From sequence record LR745206.1: 64,000 nucleotides of DNA, one strand, 5' to 3'. The position numbers were made by a program, and so were the translations under genes. The notes beneath the pieces were generated by a model. The model did not search any database. It was not told where the DNA came from and saw nothing but the letters and a program-made list of their open reading frames with translations. Below, one piece after another: positions 3,105 to 56,215 of the stretch. The stretch's first letter is position 1. Each line of letters starts with the position of its first letter.

Positions 3105-3555
3105 TATTAGAGTAAAACTTAGAAGTGAGGTAAGTAGTAAATTAGCATTTGTTAAATTAATTAAAGAATGTACTAATCTTGGTCTTAAAGACGCTAAATG
3201 GACTTGTGATACCCTTCATGAAAACCTCAGAAAAGGTTTGGATAAATCGATTGATATAGAGTTAATTGGTGGTGTAGATGGTCTTGGAAATTCTTATCTA
3301 AAAGTATTCCAACAAGGTATTTTAGATATAGGAGTTAATGCTTTTGTTAATGGTGGTGTAGCATGGGAGAGAAATTTTAAAATGTTATCAATCGGTATAG
3401 GAGAAAAGAAAGATTATTCTGATTTTATTTCTGAATATGTTAATACTGTTGATTTGGAACATGGTAAAGATATTATTAATTTGTTGATAGATAAATTATC
3501 ACAAAATGATTTAGAGGAAATATTTGAAATTATAAGTAAAGAAATTAAGATATGA
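3091..3555 (+). CDS. Protein with ribosomal L7/L12 C-terminal-like segment
   Basis: KLAFVKLIKECTNLGLKDAK resembles the L7/L12 CTD K-x-x-VIK-x-x-R-x-x-TGLGLKEAK signature. Confidence 0.5.
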   Translation: MKRNNIRVKLRSEVSSKLAFVKLIKECTNLGLKDAKWTCDTLHENLRKGLDKSIDIELIGGVDGLGNSYLKVFQQGILDIGVNAFVNGGVAWERNFKMLSIGIGEKKDYSDFISEYVNTVDLEHGKDIINLLIDKLSQNDLEEIFEIISKEIKI

Positions 3556-23774: not shown

Positions 23775-25428
23775 ACTTAACATATTTTTCGATCTTTTTT
23801 AATTTAATAATATCATTTTTCAAGTCAAGTGATGATCTTCTACTTAAATAAGATTCAACATCTCTTTTTACTAATCTATAAGAAAATTCAGATAGTAAGT
23901 TTCTAAGGTTGGAAGAACTTGGTGTTAGAAGGTTATCATGAAATACATTATGTATTGATGCTATTTTATGATAGGTGAAATTGATATCTTCTATTGTGTT
24001 TATATTTTGTTTACTGATGTAATCCTTTATATAAGTTCCTATACTAAACATCAATTCAAAATATTCTAAAATATCTTCATGATCTGATCCAATATATGAC
24101 CTTACTATACTTAAATTTGATATCATATTATTTTTGATATCATTATATTCTTTTGTATTACTTTGATAAAAATCAACTAGTTTATTGAAATAATATTCTT
24201 TATCATCACTACCAGTCTTCATTATATTATTTATATTTTCACCAAACCTGAAAATGCCAATAACTCTGGGTCTATCTCCGTATAGAGAAAAGGCTGAATA
24301 ATCTCCACATAAAATAGTTGATATGAATTTTTGTAGATTTCTTAAATCCATAGTATCTTTAGATATACCCATTTTATTAATCAATTTTCTCAAATATCTA
24401 TCTATGTTTTGCTTTTTAATATCAGCATCGGTCATTAATTTTGTTGCTCCTTCTTTATCTTCTGATCTTTGTTTAGATATTTGTGAAGGTTTTTCATAAA
24501 AGGATGCTTTATCTGGATCCAACATATTATCTAAATAAAATACAATACAGAAATCTGAGTTTTCAATAGGTTCCCAATCATAACTACCACCTAGTGAATG
24601 ATTATCATCACCCCAATTTACTAACTCACCTCTTGATGTCATTGGTAAATTAAAATCAAATGGTGATGGATCATCACTATTGTTTATATCAAAGCCTTCG
24701 ATAGAAAGTGGATTATTATCCGGTGTGTATTTATATAAACATCGATGATCACTATTTGGTGAATATCTATCACCTATTGACCAAGAATATCTACCCCAAT
24801 CTCTCCAGTTTGTTTCATCTATTGATATATGATCATATTGTGGATCGGTACCAGATGATACACCTTGTATAGCATACATTAGATCACCATCTAAAAATAT
24901 TTTAGCTTTATCTAGAGTTCTTCTACTTCTAGATTCATTAAAGAATCCAATTACTTGGTCACCGTGTCGTATATTCCTATAATCATCATATTTTAATCTC
25001 TTCAATTTTCCAGTTTTTACATTTAATGTGTTTTTTATATAATCAATATCATCAATGGTGAAATGTTCGGTATCTCTATTTCTATTTCCTCTATTATTCT
25101 TATATTTGTTGAATTCCATTCTTTTATCACCAACACCAGTATATCCTATATATCCTTTATCTAAAGAAAACCAAAATTTAACACAAAAAACTCCCCAAGT
25201 ATTAAATATTTCTTTTCTATTATCTATTTTTAATGCTTTTTTGGTGCTGATATATTCTACAACATCCTCTGATATTTTATCAATGGGAAAATCATAAATT
25301 GATTTTAATTTCTTTAATGAATTAACGAATTTTTTAGAATCATTTTTACTAATTTTATTAGTTAAGTATTTAACAATTTTAGAAATTGTAGATGATTCAA
25401 ATGCTTCGTATAGTGAAATATATCTCAT
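23761..25428 (-). CDS. Hypothetical protein with MRYISLYEAFES N-terminal motif
   Basis: 555 aa ORF; TTAATATATA upstream. Confidence 0.75.
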   Translation of the reverse strand: MRYISLYEAFESSTISKIVKYLTNKISKNDSKKFVNSLKKLKSIYDFPIDKISEDVVEYISTKKALKIDNRKEIFNTWGVFCVKFWFSLDKGYIGYTGVGDKRMEFNKYKNNRGNRNRDTEHFTIDDIDYIKNTLNVKTGKLKRLKYDDYRNIRHGDQVIGFFNESRSRRTLDKAKIFLDGDLMYAIQGVSSGTDPQYDHISIDETNWRDWGRYSWSIGDRYSPNSDHRCLYKYTPDNNPLSIEGFDINNSDDPSPFDFNLPMTSRGELVNWGDDNHSLGGSYDWEPIENSDFCIVFYLDNMLDPDKASFYEKPSQISKQRSEDKEGATKLMTDADIKKQNIDRYLRKLINKMGISKDTMDLRNLQKFISTILCGDYSAFSLYGDRPRVIGIFRFGENINNIMKTGSDDKEYYFNKLVDFYQSNTKEYNDIKNNMISNLSIVRSYIGSDHEDILEYFELMFSIGTYIKDYISKQNINTIEDINFTYHKIASIHNVFHDNLLTPSSSNLRNLLSEFSYRLVKRDVESYLSRRSSLDLKNDIIKLKKIEKYVKSILN

Positions 25429-25489
25429 ATAATTTATATATTAAATTTTATTTTGTAAATCGAAACTTTATTACTATTTTTGTCTAAGA

Positions 25490-25920
25490 ATTAAGAGTCA
25501 TTAAAATAATATGTCGTGAGACAAGCAATAGCTTTCCTACCAGAGACCGATTAAAAGGATTTGGATAAAATAAAATGTGGATGAGTTTTAGTGAAATTAT
25601 GGTGGTAAGTAGCTGTTAAATAAGTTAACATCTTTAATAAACCCAGTGAACCACCTTGTATAACTATATAAGAATATGTAAAGATGTAGGTGCTTAAATT
25701 GTGTTGGTGATAAAGTACTTCAAATTACTAGAAAAGATAAATCCAACTCTATGGAGATTTTAACGAGCAGAATGGTAACACTGCTTAACCAAGGCAGTAA
25801 CGTACATAAGTCCATTAAAAGGTAATCCTAAGTGATGAGGTCACTAAAAGTCAAGGAATAAGGTTCTAGGGTTCCGACCATACTTGACAGAAGTTCCCAA
25901 ATCTTCATATTTGAAGTAAA
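25490..25920 (+). ncRNA. Candidate large structured ncRNA
   Basis: No ORF of 60 aa or more, TAnnTTTG promoter at 25475, many local hairpins (GTC-GTGA-GAC, AAGC-AATA-GCTT, ACTGC/GCAGT, AGTGA/TCACT, GTCAAG/CTTGAC). Confidence 0.5.
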
Positions 25921-25936
25921 TTATGAAAAGTATAAA

Positions 25937-26095
25937 ATGATGGAAATTGAGTGGAGTGAAGAGAGATTAAAATCTCTGTATATTGGGTATTGTAATATGT
26001 GTTCTGTATTAACAATAAAACCAATATTGATTGATGATTTTAATGAGAGTGAGTATAAAAGAGTGAAAGAAACCTATCTCGCATTTAGGAGATAA
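25937..26095 (+). CDS. Small hypothetical protein (52 aa, below the ORF-track cutoff)
   Basis: MMEIEWSEERLKSLYIGYC...LAFRR, translated by hand. Confidence 0.5.
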   Translation: MMEIEWSEERLKSLYIGYCNMCSVLTIKPILIDDFNESEYKRVKETYLAFRR

Positions 26096-26110
26096 AAATT
26101 TAAAATAAAG

Positions 26111-26512
26111 ATGAAATTAAGAGAAAAAATTAGCAAAGACTACATGACAGCTTTCAAAGCAAGAAATACTGTGGCAAAGAACATACTTTCTGTTGTTAAA
26201 AGTGATATACAAACAATTGAGAAAAACAAATGTAAAGAACTATCTGATGAAGAAGTTATGGCTATTCTATTAAAAACAGCTAAGTCTTTAAAGGAGACTA
26301 TTAAATTTGGAGGTGAACAAGCTAAAATTGAATTAGAGATAGTTGAGTCTTACTTACCAAAACAAATGTCAAGAGAAGAGGTTACCGAGAAGATATCTAG
26401 TCTTGTTGATTCAGGAGTTACAAAAATTGGTGACATTATGAAAGAATTTGCTGGATTCAATGATAAAAAAATGGTTTCCGAAATAATTAGAGAGGTGATA
26501 ACTAATATATAA
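26111..26512 (+). CDS. GatB/YqeY domain protein
   Basis: KDYMTAFKAR, LSDEEV, ELEIVESYLPKQMS. Confidence 0.9.
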   Translation: MKLREKISKDYMTAFKARNTVAKNILSVVKSDIQTIEKNKCKELSDEEVMAILLKTAKSLKETIKFGGEQAKIELEIVESYLPKQMSREEVTEKISSLVDSGVTKIGDIMKEFAGFNDKKMVSEIIREVITNI

Positions 26513-26523
26513 TATATAATATT

Positions 26524-26586
26524 ATGAAGAATATAAGATTAAATGATGATAGATTTTTATTAACTAACTGCAAAGCAGATTGGTAA
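26524..26586 (+). CDS. Putative attenuator leader peptide (Asn/Asp) MKNIRLNDDRFLLTNCKADW
   Basis: 3 Asn + 3 Asp in 20 aa directly upstream of a terminator and AspRS. Confidence 0.7.
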   Translation: MKNIRLNDDRFLLTNCKADW

Positions 26587-26611
26587 TAGAAAGTTATTAT
26601 CTAAATCTTGA

Positions 26612-26642
26612 AACCCAGTTAGTAACTAACTGGGTTTTTTTT
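26612..26642 (+). terminator. Attenuator terminator before AspRS
   Basis: AACCCAGTTAG-TAA-CTAACTGGGTT followed by T-tract. Confidence 0.85.
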
Positions 26643-26669
26643 ATGCAAAAAATTAAAAAAATAGAAATT

Positions 26670-27944
26670 ATGAAACGAACAAATGTAAATGAATTAGGAA
26701 ACTTTATTAATGAGAGAGTATTGGTAAAGGGTTGGGTGTCTCAATTTAGAGAGCTCAAAAAAATGTCTTTCCTAATATTAAGAGAAAGAACAGGGTATTG
26801 TCAAATAATAATACCAAAAGAAATATCACAATCTATTTCACCAGAATCGGTTGTTGAAATTATAGGTATTGTGAAAAAAGAAGAGCAATCTAGATATGGT
26901 GGATATGAAATAGTAGCTGAGTCCATTAATGTTGTATCAAATGCTCAACTATTACCATTTCCTATCAATAGGGAAGAAGGTATACCACAATTTAATGTTT
27001 TGAATAATTATAGACCTTTGACTTTGAGAAAAGAAAAAGAAAGATGTATATTTAAAATACAATCTGAGATTATATGGGCATATCGTGAGTATTTAAGATC
27101 ACAAGGATTTACAGAGATACAGTCAACAAAATTATCATCTGCTGGATTAGAAGGTGGATCTGAAATGTTTGAAATAGAGTATTTTGGTGAGAAAATGTAT
27201 TTAACACAAAGTCCACAATTCTACAAACAAATGATGGTTGGTGTTTATGAGAGAGTATTTGAAGTTGGTAAAGTCTATCGAGCAGAGGGATCAAATAGCA
27301 ATAGACATTTAACAGAGTTTGTTGGATTTGAATTTGAAATGGGATTCATAGAATCTGTTGAGGAGGTTATGCAAATGGAAGAGAATGTATTTGAGTATAT
27401 TTTCAACCATCTAAAATCTTTTTGTGTAAAAGAATTAGAATATTTTGGTATTAATTTAGAATTCAATCCAATACCAAGAATAACGTATCAAGAATCATTA
27501 GAGATTATTAAAAATTCTGGATTAAACTATGAGAAGATAGGGTTAAATGCTGAAGCAGAAAAAATAATTGGTGAGTATGTCTTAGAACATATGAAATCTG
27601 AATTCGTTTTTATAACAAAATATCCTTTATCAGAAAGACCATTCTATGCAATGCCATCTATTGAAGAGGGATGTTCTGAAACATTTGAACTATTATATAA
27701 AGGTATTGAGGTAACATCTGGTGGTCAAAGAATACACAATTATGAAGAATTGGTTAAATCAATTGAATCAAAGGGTTTGAATCCTGAGAATTTTGAAAGT
27801 TATTTGATGGCTTTTAAATATGGTATGCCAACACATGGAGGTATGGGTATAGGTTTAGAAAGAATACTAAAACAGATGCTTAATTTGAATTCTGTTGAAG
27901 AAGCATCACTAATTCCACGAACAAAAGAAAAAAATATACATTAA
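26670..27944 (+). CDS. aspS: Aspartyl-tRNA synthetase, archaeal/eukaryote-like type (possibly non-discriminating)
   Basis: OB-fold N-terminus, LTQSPQFYKQ, YRAEGS..RHLTEF, EVTSGGQRIH, GMPTHGGMGIGLER; start ATG 26670. Confidence 0.88.
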   Translation: MKRTNVNELGNFINERVLVKGWVSQFRELKKMSFLILRERTGYCQIIIPKEISQSISPESVVEIIGIVKKEEQSRYGGYEIVAESINVVSNAQLLPFPINREEGIPQFNVLNNYRPLTLRKEKERCIFKIQSEIIWAYREYLRSQGFTEIQSTKLSSAGLEGGSEMFEIEYFGEKMYLTQSPQFYKQMMVGVYERVFEVGKVYRAEGSNSNRHLTEFVGFEFEMGFIESVEEVMQMEENVFEYIFNHLKSFCVKELEYFGINLEFNPIPRITYQESLEIIKNSGLNYEKIGLNAEAEKIIGEYVLEHMKSEFVFITKYPLSERPFYAMPSIEEGCSETFELLYKGIEVTSGGQRIHNYEELVKSIESKGLNPENFESYLMAFKYGMPTHGGMGIGLERILKQMLNLNSVEEASLIPRTKEKNIH

Positions 27945-32265: not shown

Positions 32266-32379
32266 ATTTTATAAATAAATTAAAATAAATTAGGTAGATA
32301 TAAAACTTTTATCTATATTTGTATAAAATAATAACAAAAACGAAAAAAGGGACAATTCCTTTTTAATATATAAGAAATA

Positions 32380-32475
32380 ATGACAACAAATAGTACACAT
32401 AAGAATTTTAGTAAATCGCATAAATGGTTTAGCAACCAATCGTTCGGTACTGAAAGTGTATTGTCATTAAATTAA
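32380..32475 (+). CDS. Putative attenuator leader peptide (His/Phe/Trp) MTTNSTHKNFSKSHKWFSNQSFGTESVLSLN
   Basis: 2 His, 3 Phe, 1 Trp; followed by a terminator and His/Phe/Trp tRNAs. Confidence 0.75.
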   Translation: MTTNSTHKNFSKSHKWFSNQSFGTESVLSLN

Positions 32476-32508
32476 TGTAGAAGTTAAATTAATAAACAAC
32501 AATATTTC

Positions 32509-32538
32509 AATCCGAACTCAAAAGTTCGGATTTTTTTT
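32509..32538 (+). terminator. Attenuator terminator, His/Phe/Trp tRNA block
   Basis: AATCCGAAC-TCAAAA-GTTCGGATT plus T-tract. Confidence 0.85.
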
Positions 32539-33557: not shown

Positions 33558-33629
33558 CAAGAATAAAAGTTAAAAAATTAGGAATTGACAAAAACAAACA
33601 TTACATTTGTAATATATAAAGAAGAAATT

Positions 33630-33704
33630 ATGAAAACTATTAACAACACATCGAAAAGTTCTAGTCGCTCATCAAGTATGAGTGAGATTCGATTGTATTC
33701 GTAA
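33630..33704 (+). CDS. Putative attenuator leader peptide (Ser/Arg) MKTINNTSKSSSRSSSMSEIRLYS
   Basis: 9 Ser + 2 Arg in 24 aa; own TACATTTG promoter; terminator then Arg/Ser tRNAs. Confidence 0.82.
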   Translation: MKTINNTSKSSSRSSSMSEIRLYS

Positions 33705-33726
33705 TAGTCAAGTATAGATATTTATG

Positions 33727-33757
33727 AAACCTCGAATCTAACGATTTGAGGTTTTTT
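33727..33757 (+). terminator. Attenuator terminator, Ser/Arg tRNA block
   Basis: AAACCTCGAATC-TAAC-GATTTGAGGTTT plus T-tract. Confidence 0.85.
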
Positions 33758-34022: not shown

Positions 34023-34031
34023 CAAAAATTT

Positions 34032-34118
34032 GGAGAGCAATCTAATCTGGTGATTAGGGCCGCCTGCTAAGCGTGTCGCACCTTCGGGTGTGGGGTTCAA
34101 TTCCTCTGTTCTCCGCCA
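34032..34118 (+). tRNA. tRNA-Ser (GCT)
   Basis: CGC-CT-GCT-AA-GCG; variable GCACC-TTCG-GGTGT; encoded CCA. Confidence 0.8.
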
Positions 34119-34121
34119 AAT

Positions 34122-34205
34122 GGAAGGCAATCTAACTTGGTAGTTAGCCACGCTTGGAAAGCGTCGGGCACCTTCGGGTGTGGGTTTCGATTACTCTGTC
34201 TTCCG
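34122..34205 (+). tRNA. tRNA-Ser (GGA)
   Basis: ACGC-TT-GGA-AA-GCGT; same variable arm as the preceding gene. Confidence 0.8.
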
Positions 34206-34210
34206 CAAAT

Positions 34211-34291
34211 GCCTCTGTATCGTCCTCGTCTTCGAAACGAGAGTAGCGTAACGGATAATGAAAAATGTAGGTTCGAATCCTACCAGGGGTA
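34211..34291 (+). tRNA. Rearranged tRNA-Arg (TCG)-like gene: no D arm before the anticodon, D-arm-like hairpin after it
   Basis: GCCTCTG/CAGGGGT acceptor, CTCGT-CT-TCG-AA-ACGAG, CGT-AACGGATA-ATG, GTAGG-TTCGAAT-CCTAC. Confidence 0.6.
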
Positions 34292-34295
34292 CAAA

Positions 34296-34598
34296 ATGAA
34301 TGAAATAATTATAGGAGATTGTCCGATTTGTGATCGTGAAATGTGGAGAGGTAGCTTTGTCGATAGGCATCACTTTTACCCTAAGTGTAAAGGTGGTAAA
34401 GAAACAGAGTATCTACATAAAGTGTGTCACCGAAAGATACATTCTGTTTTTACAGAAAATGAATTGGCAAAAGAATATAATAATGCTGAGATTGTTAAAT
34501 CTCATCCAGAAATAATTAAATTCATAAAATGGGTATCTAAGAAAGATCCTGATTTTTATGATAGTACAGTAACACATAATAGGAAAAGGAGAAGGTAA
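34296..34598 (+). CDS. HNH-family nuclease-like protein
   Basis: CPIC...DRHHFYPKCKGG...LHKVCHRKIH; start ATG 34296 (the track extension overlaps tRNAs). Confidence 0.8.
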   Translation: MNEIIIGDCPICDREMWRGSFVDRHHFYPKCKGGKETEYLHKVCHRKIHSVFTENELAKEYNNAEIVKSHPEIIKFIKWVSKKDPDFYDSTVTHNRKRRR

Positions 34599-34906: not shown

Positions 34907-35084
34907 GAGAGAGGATATGTGATATATAAGATATGAAGAAAGTATTTAAATTTATCACATATCCTTTAAGTAGATATATAAAAAATAGAATTAAATCTAG
35001 ATTAAATTGGTAATAATGAAAATTATTCCTATATTTGTAATTAATAATTAAAACATAAACGAAAAATATAATATATAAATAATA

Positions 35085-35129
35085 ATGAGAGCTTTACATA
35101 CATACAAAATTACGATTGACTTGGGTTAA
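35085..35129 (+). CDS. Putative attenuator leader peptide MRALHTYKITIDLG (His)
   Basis: Single His codon; 3' end complementary to the terminator 5' arm; upstream of HisRS operon. Confidence 0.55.
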   Translation: MRALHTYKITIDLG

Positions 35130-35154
35130 CCCAGCTGTATTTTATATGTATATA

Positions 35155-35185
35155 GCCCAGTCAATCTTTTGACTGGGTTTTTTTA
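35155..35185 (+). terminator. Attenuator terminator before HisRS operon
   Basis: GCCCAGTCAA-TCTTT-TTGACTGGGT plus T-tract. Confidence 0.85.
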
Positions 35186-35207: not shown

Positions 35208-35411
35208 ATGAAAACAAAAGATGATAGCTGGTACGAGCAAAAAGTTGAAAGTATCAGAAAGAGGAAAAGAAAACTCCATCTTATCCAAGAGCCAAAGGTT
35301 AGAAAGAGAATTAAGGCGGATTTAAAACGTGAGCAAAGAGGGGCTAAAAGATCTTCTAAAAACTCATTAAAGAAATGGATGGAAAACGAAATAAATAAAT
35401 TAAACGATTAA
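35208..35411 (+). CDS. Small basic helical protein
   Basis: 67 aa Lys/Arg-rich ORF. Confidence 0.6.
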   Translation: MKTKDDSWYEQKVESIRKRKRKLHLIQEPKVRKRIKADLKREQRGAKRSSKNSLKKWMENEINKLND

Positions 35412-35424
35412 AAAAATTATAAAA

Positions 35425-36060
35425 ATGGAAATTAAAATTGATAGTACTTATAAAGGAACAAGAATCCTTTTTGCGGAAACAGCTAAGAGTAAACGTGTTT
35501 TACTAAATGATATGATTGAAATACTTGAATCTTATGGATATCAAGAAATAATGATACCAATCATACAAAAACAAGAAACTTTCGCTTCAAAGGTGGGTGA
35601 TGAAAATCAAAACATGATGTATAACTTTAAAGATAGAGGTAATCGTGATTTATGTTTATCACCAGAGTACACAGCAATTGTTCAACAATTAGCCTCTGAT
35701 AGAATGAAGTTTGATAAAGATGTTAAAATGTTCTACATAGGAGAATGTTTTAGAGGAGAAAATACACAAGCTGGAAGATGGAGACAATTCACACAATTTG
35801 GTGTTGAAGTCTTAAATCCATCTAAAGACTACTCTGATGAAATGATAGAAATTGCTACTAAACTAATTGAATTAGTTACAAAAAATTATGAATTAAACAC
35901 AGACGCAACAAGAGGTCTTGACTACTACAATGGTGGAAAGGGATTTGAAATTGCTTGTCCTGAGTTGGGAGCTGCTAAACAAATTTGTGGGGGAGGTTCT
36001 TATGAAGGAGGTATTGGTTTTGCCGTTGGTGTGGACAGATTACTATTATGCAACAGATAA
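35425..36060 (+). CDS. hisS: Miniature histidyl-tRNA synthetase (catalytic core only)
   Basis: YKGTR, LCLSPEYTA, FRGENTQAGRWRQFTQFGVE, RGLDYY, GGGSY, GFAVGVDR; ends with no anticodon-binding domain. Confidence 0.85.
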   Translation: MEIKIDSTYKGTRILFAETAKSKRVLLNDMIEILESYGYQEIMIPIIQKQETFASKVGDENQNMMYNFKDRGNRDLCLSPEYTAIVQQLASDRMKFDKDVKMFYIGECFRGENTQAGRWRQFTQFGVEVLNPSKDYSDEMIEIATKLIELVTKNYELNTDATRGLDYYNGGKGFEIACPELGAAKQICGGGSYEGGIGFAVGVDRLLLCNR

Positions 36061-36323
36061 GATATTTAAATTTTAATAAAATAGGTGATAGATTTGCATC
36101 AGTTGGTGATAATACCACTGATGTAAAAATAACATTTAAAACAGGAAATGAATTGAGTAATTTCATTAACAGCAATGAATCTATATTTAAGAATATGGAT
36201 TATAAATGTGACACCTCACTATTTAAAATAGTGAAGATTGAAAAAATAAAACACTTTTCTATAATAGCAAAGATAGAAAGAATAACTCTAAGAGAGTATA
36301 ACCTAGAAAGATTATTAACATGA
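36048..36323 (+). CDS. Hypothetical protein
   Basis: 91 aa; C-terminal REYNLERLL. Confidence 0.6.
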   Translation: MQQIRYLNFNKIGDRFASVGDNTTDVKITFKTGNELSNFINSNESIFKNMDYKCDTSLFKIVKIEKIKHFSIIAKIERITLREYNLERLLT

Positions 36324-37033
36324 AAACAAAACAAAGAATAAAAAATTTAAGAAGTATAGCTCCTGATTATCCGAGGATACCTCATTTTTCAAAAGCTATA
36401 TCAAATATGACTCACGATGATATATTAACTGAGTCGAATATACAATTCCCCTTATCTGGTTGGGTACAGGAGAAAGTTGATGGTGCTAATATGGGTATAT
36501 CCTGGACAAGTGGTCCACTTATTAGAAACAGAAATAATATTTTAAAGAAAGGATATATTGATACTGATACACCAGCTAAATTACAATTCAGGCCTGCTTG
36601 GAATTGGATACATGAACATGGACAAGATATTAGAAATATTTCTAAAGAGTTGATGTCTCCTGTGACAATTTATGGTGAGTGGATGTTAGCAAAACATTCA
36701 TTGGAATATGACAAATTAACTGATTGGTTTTTAGCTTATGATATTTATTTATCAGAAGAAAGAAGATTTTTGGCTCCTGATATTTTTGAGGAATTAATGT
36801 CTAAGACTAATATCAAATATATCAAACCAAAGAAGATAATATTTAATAATTTAGATGAGGTTGTTAGATATTCTGAGAAAAATTCAGATTTTAGAAATGG
36901 TAAACAAGAGGGTATCGTTATTAAAATATCTGATGGTAGTTCAGTAACAGATTCTTATAAAGTAGTTAATAAACACTTTATAAGAAGAGAAGATTTTAAT
37001 AAGGAATTAATAAAAAATAAGATTAAGAAATAA
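36320..37033 (+). CDS. ATP-dependent RNA ligase family protein
   Basis: Motif I QEKVDGAN, YGEW, AYDI, EGIVIK. Confidence 0.8.
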   Translation: MKTKQRIKNLRSIAPDYPRIPHFSKAISNMTHDDILTESNIQFPLSGWVQEKVDGANMGISWTSGPLIRNRNNILKKGYIDTDTPAKLQFRPAWNWIHEHGQDIRNISKELMSPVTIYGEWMLAKHSLEYDKLTDWFLAYDIYLSEERRFLAPDIFEELMSKTNIKYIKPKKIIFNNLDEVVRYSEKNSDFRNGKQEGIVIKISDGSSVTDSYKVVNKHFIRREDFNKELIKNKIKK

Positions 37034-54941: not shown

Positions 54942-55028
54942 CTAAAAAATATTAAAATAAATTAGGTAGATTAGAAAAAACTACTTATATTTGTAAAAGA
55001 ATTAATAAACAAGATAATAAATAAACAA

Positions 55029-55115
55029 ATGAACACAATTACTAACATAGCGTCTTACGAATCTTATTATGAAGAGGGTAACCTAGTCAGACGAAATAAC
55101 TATGTCGTAATGTAA
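55029..55115 (+). CDS. Putative attenuator leader peptide (Tyr/Glu) MNTITNIASYESYYEEGNLVRRNNYVVM
   Basis: YESYYEE core (4 Tyr, 3 Glu in total); terminator then Tyr/Glu tRNAs. Confidence 0.82.
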   Translation: MNTITNIASYESYYEEGNLVRRNNYVVM

Positions 55116-55139
55116 GTAATTATATAAACGAATATTTAT

Positions 55140-55173
55140 ACCCAGTCTGACAAATGTTAGACTGGGTTTTTTT
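55140..55173 (+). terminator. Attenuator terminator, Tyr/Glu tRNA block
   Basis: ACCCAGTCTGAC-AAAT-GTTAGACTGGGT plus T-tract. Confidence 0.85.
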
Positions 55174-55523: not shown

Positions 55524-55647
55524 GGTGATGTAGAGCAATTGGTAGCTCATCTGCTAGTTAAATGATGGAATAATCATAATCCTGAAGCTATTATAAAATA
55601 GGCGACACGGTTGGTTCTTGGTGTAGGTTCGAGTCCTATCATCACTA
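55524..55647 (+). ncRNA. tRNA-like RNA with a large insertion replacing the anticodon arm
   Basis: Acceptor GGTGATG/CATCACT, D arm GAGC-AATTGGTA-GCTC, T arm GTAGG-TTCGAGT-CCTAT; about 70 nt insert with small hairpins. Confidence 0.6.
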
Positions 55648-55906: not shown

Positions 55907-56080
55907 CAAAAAGAAATAATATAATATATTTGGTTTATTTGGTTTATTGAAATATTATATTTATATTTGTAAAAGAATCGTAATCCCAAGTAACCCCTTG
56001 GTCGATTTTTTAACAAATTAAAAAAGATTAAAAGGGAAGGTAAAACTTTTTATATATACATACATATAATAGGAACGAAA

Positions 56081-56164
56081 ATGAAAAATTTAAATAACAT
56101 ATCAATAGCAGTAATCGGGAACGGCGCGGGAGCGATACGTGAGTGGCTGAGTTATGGTATTTAA
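56081..56164 (+). CDS. Putative attenuator leader peptide (Ile/Gly/Ala) MKNLNNISIAVIGNGAGAIREWLSYGI
   Basis: 5 Ile (3 ATA), 4 Gly, 3 Ala; terminator then Ile/Gly/Ala tRNAs, GlyRS and AlaRS. Confidence 0.82.
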   Translation: MKNLNNISIAVIGNGAGAIREWLSYGI

Positions 56165-56183
56165 TTAAATTAAAATATTTCAA

Positions 56184-56215
56184 AAACCCAGTCACGAAAA
56201 TGACTGGGTTTTTTT
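56184..56215 (+). terminator. Attenuator terminator, Ile/Gly/Ala block
   Basis: AAACCCAGTCA-CGAAAA-TGACTGGGTTT plus T-tract. Confidence 0.85.

Follow-up and report, generated by a model that had tools for sequence, protein, structure and literature searches.

A predicted leader-peptide attenuator specific for aspartate before the aspartyl-tRNA synthetase gene of a huge phage, and a set of similar units across its genome

In the pheST operon of Escherichia coli, a synthetase is placed behind a leader open reading frame (ORF), pheM, that is rich in codons for the cognate amino acid and followed by alternative antiterminator and terminator hairpins. The pheM leader is chromosomal and proteobacterial, and five of its fourteen codons are for Phe. 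Here, we describe a unit of comparable layout before the aspartyl-tRNA synthetase (AspRS) gene, aspS, of an uncultured huge phage. The window, by which we mean the whole stretch of 64,000 nucleotides (nt) that was analyzed, is identical in sequence to bases 310001-374000 of LR745206.1 (634,780 bp), and the unit lies at positions 26524-26642 of its plus strand. We regard it as very likely that this leader is a ribosome-mediated transcription attenuator specific for Asp that serves the phage AspRS gene. The components of the unit, the way they are conserved and co-vary, the two exclusive structures, the stall geometry and a genome-wide rule of cognate codons were shown by computation. Compared to pheST, the phage unit is viral, would sense Asp with only two codons, shows no sequence similarity, and is one of many, with tRNA operons among them.

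The trp operon leader (trpL) resembles the phage unit in its two tandem regulatory codons and in its succession of a 1:2 hairpin, a 2:3 antiterminator, and a 3:4 terminator. In trpL, a stalled ribosome frees region 2 and a ribosome at the stop codon favors termination, and this three-state logic was reproduced in silico for the phage unit. The two differ in what they control (biosynthetic enzymes in trp, a synthetase in the phage). Moreover, unlike trpL, the read-through form of the phage leader has an extra inner hairpin, and its region 1 pairs beyond the leader stop codon. How many regulatory codons there are and where they are placed has been analyzed in a published study (PMC1183508). Outside the Proteobacteria, Naville and Gautheret (2010) used a terminator-centered comparison and predicted that, in Bacillus, His leader peptides stand before hisS paralogues and hisZ, which is leader-peptide control of synthetase-family genes (PMC2965389). 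That case is cellular, His-specific and a single system, whereas the phage set is genome-wide.

At the sequence level, the leader ORF starts with an ATG at 26524 and has 20 codons followed by a TAA stop codon at 26584-26586 (26524-26586, plus strand), and its codons 7-9 read Asn-Asp-Asp. The regulatory codons GAT GAT (Asp-Asp, 26545-26550) stand at the base of the 5' arm of hairpin P1 and upstream of the antiterminator 5' strand, ACTAACTG (26563-26570). P1 is 77 nt long in the minimum-free-energy fold and covers most of the leader ORF (26534-26610), with the terminator directly on its 3' side. The antiterminator strand is the exact 8-nt reverse complement of CAGTTAGT (26616-26623) within the intrinsic terminator (26612-26642), which has an 11-pair stem, a 3-nt loop and a run of eight T. 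An earlier note on this DNA, made by a model from the letters, had pointed out the exact complementarity, the Asn-Asp-Asp codons just upstream of it, and the terminator that it would compete with; the coordinates were right, the codons are in the ORF as written, and the pairing of terminator and antiterminator complement stood up to the comparisons with shuffled sequences.

In these comparisons, the segment 26505-26675 folded at -41.8 kcal/mol (z = -7.8), which none of 200 shuffles equaled, and a Watson-Crick match of 8 nt between the 85-nt leader and the terminator 5' arm plus loop appeared in 3 of 1000 dinucleotide shuffles. The terminator scan placed the site at 26610-26638, with 13 counted pairs (5 G-C) and then eight T up to 26642. 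It was the top-listed of five sites in the 9 kb scanned, where shuffles predict 1.6. Within the unit, leader strand 26561-26570 is a 10-nt direct repeat of the terminator 3' arm (26623-26632). Between the T run and the AspRS start lies an A-rich spacer (26643-26669), too short to hold a promoter. Since the T run ends just 27 nt before the AspRS ATG, transcription of aspS must cross the terminator.

We compared the window with five phage loci found by AspRS protein and DNA searches: L001 (LR756502.1, AspRS 85% identical), L003 and L004 (IMG/VR contigs, 79% and 77-78%), and L009 and L011 (metagenome contigs, 82% and 62%; L011 also has the leader unit). In all six loci, the leader ORF, antiterminator, terminator and short A-rich spacer stand directly before AspRS, while the upstream gene differs each time. 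It is a yqeY-like gene in the window, an ORF of 88 amino acids (aa) without Pfam family match in L001, a gene for a cold-shock protein in L003, for a NUMOD3 protein together with a tRNA-Gln in L004, and for a sigma-70 family protein in L009. Because the unit stays with AspRS while its upstream neighbor changes, the terminator is not simply the end of yqeY.

All six orthologues retain a start codon and a leader ORF, which has 14-20 codons, and in five of the six the Asp codons are in tandem (two or three). Among the orthologues, 9-16 nt separate the last Asp codon from the antiterminator strand downstream, and the Asp-Asp pair is equally distant from that strand in five of them. After the Asp pair, two sequences encode Arg by AGA and two others by CGT; this synonymous swap at two nucleotide positions argues for translation of the leader. 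The N-terminal half of the peptide is conserved and the C-terminal half variable. In L009, the reading frame shifts past the regulatory codons and the antiterminator nucleotides are retained, which fits a peptide tail that matters solely as RNA.

Covariation supports the predicted helices. In the alignment of the six sequences, P1 and the terminator together have 84.6% of their cells paired, compared to 30-48% when the partners are slid, and 14 pairs changed on both sides, a result matched by none of 500 shuffles. Taken separately, the main helix of P1 has 83% of cells paired and 7 pairs changed on both sides, and the terminator 95.5% and 4 such compensatory pairs. The antiterminator is present in all six orthologues with 7-14 bp, and its helix is 97% paired across them, with one compensatory and one G-U change. 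One position of L001 is altered jointly in both terminator arms and in the leader strand. Matching changes lengthen the antiterminator to 10 pairs in L003 and 9 in L009, and it reaches 14 pairs, including one G-U, in L011. In L004, the stem of the terminator differs strongly, and the 10-nt antiterminator differs to match. When the five orthologues were compared with 1000 shuffles, 1-79 were as good by match length and 0-38 by duplex energy.

When window positions 26300-26998 were compared with contigs of a marine metagenome run, a relative was seen that has yqeY, the leader and aspS in the same order. Its yqeY-leader contig differs from the window by 42 substitutions and 8 gaps in 383 nt. Of the substitutions, 28 are listed, every one of them in yqeY before 26503 and none in the leader ORF; another 11 differences are not shown, so a stronger conservation of the leader than of yqeY is only suggested.

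At the structural level, we folded the nascent RNA of all six orthologues up to the terminator loop, with a mask of 28 nt in place of the ribosome. The free nascent RNA of the window, L009 and L011 formed P1 and left the terminator arm free. With the ribosome on the last Asp codon, all six gave the antiterminator, and the 3' half of P1, once released, folded into an inner hairpin enclosed by it. In the window, this hairpin of the read-through form lies at 26576-26610 in the fold constrained by a ribosome on the second Asp codon, and it shows partial covariation. With the ribosome on the stop codon, the antiterminator was lost or weakened in all six. Masked folds of the Ile, Phe and Leu units introduced below showed matching three-state behavior. 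The unit has the short leader ORF, the cognate codons, the intervening intrinsic terminator, the exclusive antiterminator and the stall and stop geometry that mark a ribosome-mediated attenuator. Among the testable structural features of the trp and pheST type, all were found except that the blocking hairpin is weak in three of the six orthologues.

On these grounds, we propose how the switch would work. Transcripts from upstream would enter the unit carrying the 20-codon leader ORF. When Asp-tRNA(Asp) is ample, the ribosome would reach the stop codon; the ribosome there, or P1, would keep 26563-26570 unavailable, the terminator at 26612-26642 would form, and RNA polymerase would halt 27 nt before the AspRS start. 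When charged tRNA-Asp is scarce, the ribosome would stall with GAT in its A site and the lower half of P1 would melt. The freed 26563-26570 would then pair with 26616-26623 before the 3' arm is made, allowing read-through into aspS and the production of more AspRS. We infer that ribosomes translate the leader ORF, that transcription terminates at the predicted site, and that the charging of Asp-tRNA governs read-through. P1 could possibly act as a pause hairpin too, in our own interpretation.

In all, this genome has about fourteen predicted switches of this kind, the AspRS unit among them, and comparable sets were found in two relatives. We scanned the whole record for terminators with an upstream short ORF and a downstream gene, and obtained 127 strict terminator candidates. 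Units of the AspRS layout were seen before five further synthetase genes. The AsnRS gene (TIGR00457, 394.5 bits) follows a leader with three Asn codons, and the IleRS gene (TIGR00392, 674 bits) one with four consecutive Ile codons and seven in all. A LeuRS-like gene has a leader with four Leu codons, a truncated ValRS-like gene one with five Val codons, and the gene of a PheS-related ligase (NF051887, 423 bits; LR745206.1 613821-614897, minus strand) one with four Phe codons. When seven leaders were assigned to seven specificities, the true assignment was the sole best of 5040 permutations, both by codon count and by run length. Besides, the antiterminator duplex had a median of -12.3 kcal/mol at the 13 synthetase-linked terminators versus -5.3 at 59 others with an upstream short ORF (P = 1.6e-7).

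A related phage of 508 kb, G001, has units before its AspRS, IleRS, LeuRS-like and ValRS-like genes. It also has an operon of a HisRS-like and a PheS-related gene, where the leader alternates His and Phe codons three times. This leader, and those of the phage tRNA clusters described next, resemble the leaders of the ilvGMEDA and thr operons, in which codons for several amino acids are mixed so that several signals are integrated. However, the ilvGMEDA and thr leaders regulate biosynthetic operons, whereas the phage ones stand before tRNA and synthetase genes.

We scanned viral contigs with the AspRS terminator stem and then followed up three genomes: this genome (W01), W02 and G001. The stem scan retrieved homologous units before tRNA-Gln, tRNA-Asp and tRNA-Pro clusters, with Pro, Gln and Asp codons in their leaders. 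Among plus-strand tRNA clusters, seven in W01, seven in W02 and six in G001 have an upstream unit composed of a short ORF, an antiterminator (duplex of -9 kcal/mol or better) and a terminator. Codons in the middle of these ORFs are for the amino acids of the downstream tRNAs, and the true assignment of leaders to clusters was the sole best of 5040, 5040 and 720 permutations in the three genomes, respectively. G001 fuses the Glu/Tyr and Ile/Gly/Ala clusters, and the leader there has codons for all five amino acids. Within the window, candidate attenuators stand before the His/Phe/Trp/Lys cluster (32380-32538, ORF from 32380), the Arg/Ser cluster (33630-33757, ORF from 33630), the Glu/Tyr cluster (55029-55173, ORF from 55029) and the Ile/Gly/Met cluster (56081-56215, ORF from 56081).

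The leader of the Pro/Asp tRNA cluster of this genome has a terminator stem that is nearly base-for-base that of the AspRS unit. This near identity suggests common descent of the two units, although the match is too short for proof, and the AspRS unit may derive from a tRNA-operon leader. In other IMG/VR phages (L284:7188-7350; L286, minus strand, about 3113-3260; L282:8140-8290), the AspRS-type stem and antiterminator strand stand before tRNA-Gln/Asp/Pro clusters and not before AspRS.

Many of these units have a likely promoter motif in front of them. A motif near TTATATTTGTA, containing TAnnTTTG, has 24 matches in the window against 11.3 expected (0 of 100 shuffles). Motifs of the TAnnTTTG type lie 10-120 nt before the leader ATG of paralogous units and of the orthologues L001 and L009, and TTATATTTGTA-like examples in the window are at 32313-32323, 33601-33611, 35029-35039, 54985-54995 and 55961-55971, 28-119 nt upstream of leader starts. 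TAnnTTTG is the -7 promoter element of Bacteroidetes, and the TTATATTTGTA-like motif is probably a -7 element of phage or host promoters.

Other explanations of the locus have to be weighed against this set of results. The terminator might be no more than a leaky end of yqeY, with the small ORF and the 8-nt complement there by chance. It does lie 100 nt past the yqeY stop codon; intrinsic terminators after genes are common, as the number of strict candidates in this genome indicates, and AT-rich DNA gives many short ORFs. However, we give this explanation very little credence, since the unit tracks AspRS through a change of upstream gene in every orthologue, every one of the six has a co-varying antiterminator complement, no such complements are found at other terminators that have a short ORF before them, and the cognate-codon rule extends over the genome. 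An independent small gene unrelated to AspRS control, either a small RNA (sRNA) of about 120 nt ending at the terminator or a micropeptide, would account for a weak, sub-threshold likeness to sRNA models that end in a terminator and for the conserved N-terminal half of the peptide. It would hardly account for a unit that is always immediately upstream of AspRS on the same strand, leaving no space for a separate aspS promoter, nor for a C-terminal half that is unconserved and out of frame in L009, nor for paralogous units that obey the cognate rule; we consider it scarcely credible. A real switch driven by leader translation could also gauge general translation speed or ribosome availability instead of Asp-tRNA. 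The regulatory codons are just two, with only one Asp kept in L004, the leader of the HisRS-like gene in this genome has a single His codon, and the A-rich N-terminal codons are similar in all leaders. Nevertheless, the composition of the leaders follows the identity of the downstream synthetase or tRNA in three genomes, the fused G001 cluster has a leader that covers all of its amino acids, and the Asp-Asp pair keeps a constant distance from the antiterminator strand in five orthologues, which makes a general gauge unlikely.

Another possibility is that the leader RNA switch answers not to the ribosome but to some other factor: uncharged tRNA-Asp, in the style of a T-box, or AspRS acting on its own leader, in the way that E. 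coli ThrRS binds its own. The structure of the leader is conserved, and Rfam T-boxes stand before 11 of the 20 loci scanned for the closest cellular AspRS homologues (97-143 bits; those with genus-level names are Clostridium, Bacillus and allied Firmicutes). A T-box shares its goal with the phage unit, that is, read-through of a terminator before aspS when charged tRNA-Asp is low. However, it senses uncharged tRNA directly through about 220 nt of RNA and involves no translation, whereas the phage unit has an ORF instead. Neither a T-box (RF00230) nor another known RNA family matched at gathering score in the window or with E up to 5 in 25400-26700, where the best hit had 31 bits against a gathering score of 60 and was an unrelated sRNA. 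Moreover, the phage leader is about 120 nt long, no conserved UGGN bulge was seen across the orthologues, the apical loops vary (AAA, CUC, UUA, GGA) and offer no mimic of a GUC anticodon, and the ORF is conserved in its start and stop position. We therefore hold a non-ribosomal reader to be quite improbable. The phage gene would thus arrive by other means at the regulatory outcome that T-boxes serve in these cellular homologues. Before cellular AspRS genes, short ORFs containing runs of Asp were looked at as possible leaders and set aside: cases of the Lachnospiraceae type resemble T-box specifier regions by eye, and those of Bacillus are located after the T-box terminator and overlap the gene start. 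A case from Melainabacteria alone resembles a true leader.

Several points also weigh against an Asp-specific attenuator, the reading that we prefer. The free nascent RNA of L001, L003 and L004 already favors the antiterminator, so the case for a blocking hairpin is weaker there, but not the case for a switch. In the window, a ribosome at the stop codon would mask the antiterminator strand only at its last bases. Because GAT GAT also takes part in the pairing of P1, a constraint at the RNA level alone could preserve these codons. The small number of regulatory codons counts here too. Before more distant phage AspRS genes (39-69% identical; L005-L008, L010 and L012), the unit is lacking. No TAnnTTTG-type motif lies directly upstream of 26524 in the window, and the transcript therefore probably starts upstream of yqeY, whose insertion probably placed the AspRS leader within a longer transcript. 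A sequence search of public RNA runs returned none containing the window sequence. Finally, the coupling of transcription and translation is assumed, both for the predicted Bacteroidetes host and for the case of a phage RNA polymerase.

The earlier note had read the leader as an attenuator for both Asn and Asp. The Asp part stands, by conservation, covariation, the masked folds and the cognate design of other units. The Asn part does not: the codon before the Asp pair varies across the six orthologues (Asn, Lys, Asn, Ala, Asp, Gln), which means that Asn does not belong to the signal, and the phage AsnRS gene has its own leader with three Asn codons. The same note had suggested a non-discriminating AspRS working together with the adjacent YqeY protein, which we do not retain. 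GatB was not found in the phage genome (a Bacteroides control genome was also negative), the phage encodes its own AsnRS, and YqeY is upstream of AspRS only in the lineage of the window and not in the five orthologous loci. A GatCAB-dependent non-discriminating route, which goes with GatCAB present and AsnRS absent, was rejected for a phage without GatB that encodes AsnRS. The phage has 3 tRNA-Asn and 4 tRNA-Asp. Its AspRS falls in NF003483 (473.8 bits, cut-off 353), whose name in NCBIfam is aspartate--tRNA(Asn) ligase, so the enzyme itself may or may not discriminate between the two tRNAs.

A design like that of the earlier note was seen in another organism. In Candidatus Melainabacteria (CP064963.1, L187:1290-1500), an ORF of 32 codons lies upstream of a cellular AspRS of archaeal type, with a terminator after it. 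The ORF contains a block of five Asn, then two Asp, then three Asn codons. From its sequence, it is a candidate cellular attenuator that would sense Asn and Asp.

Regarding the genomic context, LR745206.1 has a G+C content of 29% and reads well under code 11. It is among the four largest complete genomes of Al-Shayeb et al. (2020), who placed all genomes of this size class in the Mahaphage clade, with predicted Bacteroidetes hosts, and reported dozens of tRNAs and up to 15 synthetases in huge phages (PMC7162821). The regulated gene (26670-27944, plus strand) encodes an AspRS of archaeal type with 424 aa (Pfam tRNA-synt_2, 1.3e-77, plus an OB anticodon domain). An alignment of four orthologues sets its start at the ATG at 26670, in place of the TTG at 26580 of the ORF list. 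Its closest cellular homologues are at most 47% identical; many are from Firmicutes, and others from Fraserbacteria, Bipolaricaulota and other lineages. The yqeY-like gene (26111-26512, plus strand; Pfam YqeY, E = 1.6e-17) lies outside the switch and is present as a single copy genome-wide. In the ORF-poor stretch of 680 nt before it (25429-26110), neither structure (z = -1.0) nor conservation was found.

Some further observations concern the genes and RNAs behind other units. The motif of the A-rich spacer (a run of A, TTA and more A) is kept in all six synthetase attenuators of the genome, and the spacer may be a translation-initiation region for a host without Shine-Dalgarno pairing, or a partner of the U-tract. 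The PheS-related ligase corresponds to the 'PheS-related mystery ligase SrmL' of NCBIfam, and its leader context suggests an activity tied to the supply of Phe-tRNA. At two sites (LR745206.1 34381-35709, minus strand, and 404831-406096), the genome encodes short proteins of 443 and 422 aa that are like class I synthetases. They resemble ValRS and LeuRS in their N- and C-terminal parts, with the editing insertion apparently absent, and each gene sits behind a Val- or Leu-codon-rich leader. At window positions 35085-35184, an ORF of 14 codons with one His codon is followed by a terminator, with an antiterminator complement of -13.4 kcal/mol. This unit precedes (35209-36057, 36320-37033) a very basic ORF of 67 aa and a protein of 211 aa, with an RNA ligase gene next, and the 211-aa protein matches just the N-terminal catalytic part of HisRS or HisZ. 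The counterpart of this leader in G001 is the one with alternating His and Phe codons. Among tRNA-like Rfam matches, listed at window positions 34031-34115, 34211-34291 and 55524-55647, there were a borderline match to selenocysteine tRNA (47.4 bits against a threshold of 47), a weak hit to tRNA that falls within the ORF 34137-34598, and a tRNA match of 124 nt without ARAGORN call that is possibly a tRNA with an insertion or intron.

Our literature searches, of incomplete coverage, turned up neither attenuators on the synthetase or tRNA genes of phages nor, for any organism, tRNA genes under leader-peptide attenuation; this is absence of evidence. The huge-phage paper makes no mention of attenuators on synthetase or tRNA genes (PMC7162821). 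If the units on tRNA operons act as proposed, they would be the first ribosome-mediated attenuators known on tRNA genes. The phage units would bring leader-peptide attenuation into viruses and add Asp and Asn to its specificities, and tRNA genes would join its targets if the tRNA-cluster units work. The leaders could also be used as functional labels for genes such as the PheS-related ligase, with its Phe-rich leader, and the truncated Val- and Leu-type enzymes.

We think it likely that, in huge Bacteroidetes phages, each tRNA operon and synthetase gene stands behind its own cognate attenuator, together forming a genome-wide circuit that balances supply and demand codon by codon. A ribosome stalled for a given charged tRNA would directly induce the phage copy of that tRNA or of its synthetase. 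A set of this kind, sensing demand across a whole phage genome, looks like a new use of an old mechanism. Why huge phages carry tRNAs and synthetases, and how they use them, is a long-standing question. The attenuator set implies that these genes are not just expressed but would be induced only on actual shortage of a particular charged tRNA, for example when host tRNAs or charging capacity fall during infection, and it turns the question into a testable one: which shortages the phage meets, and when.

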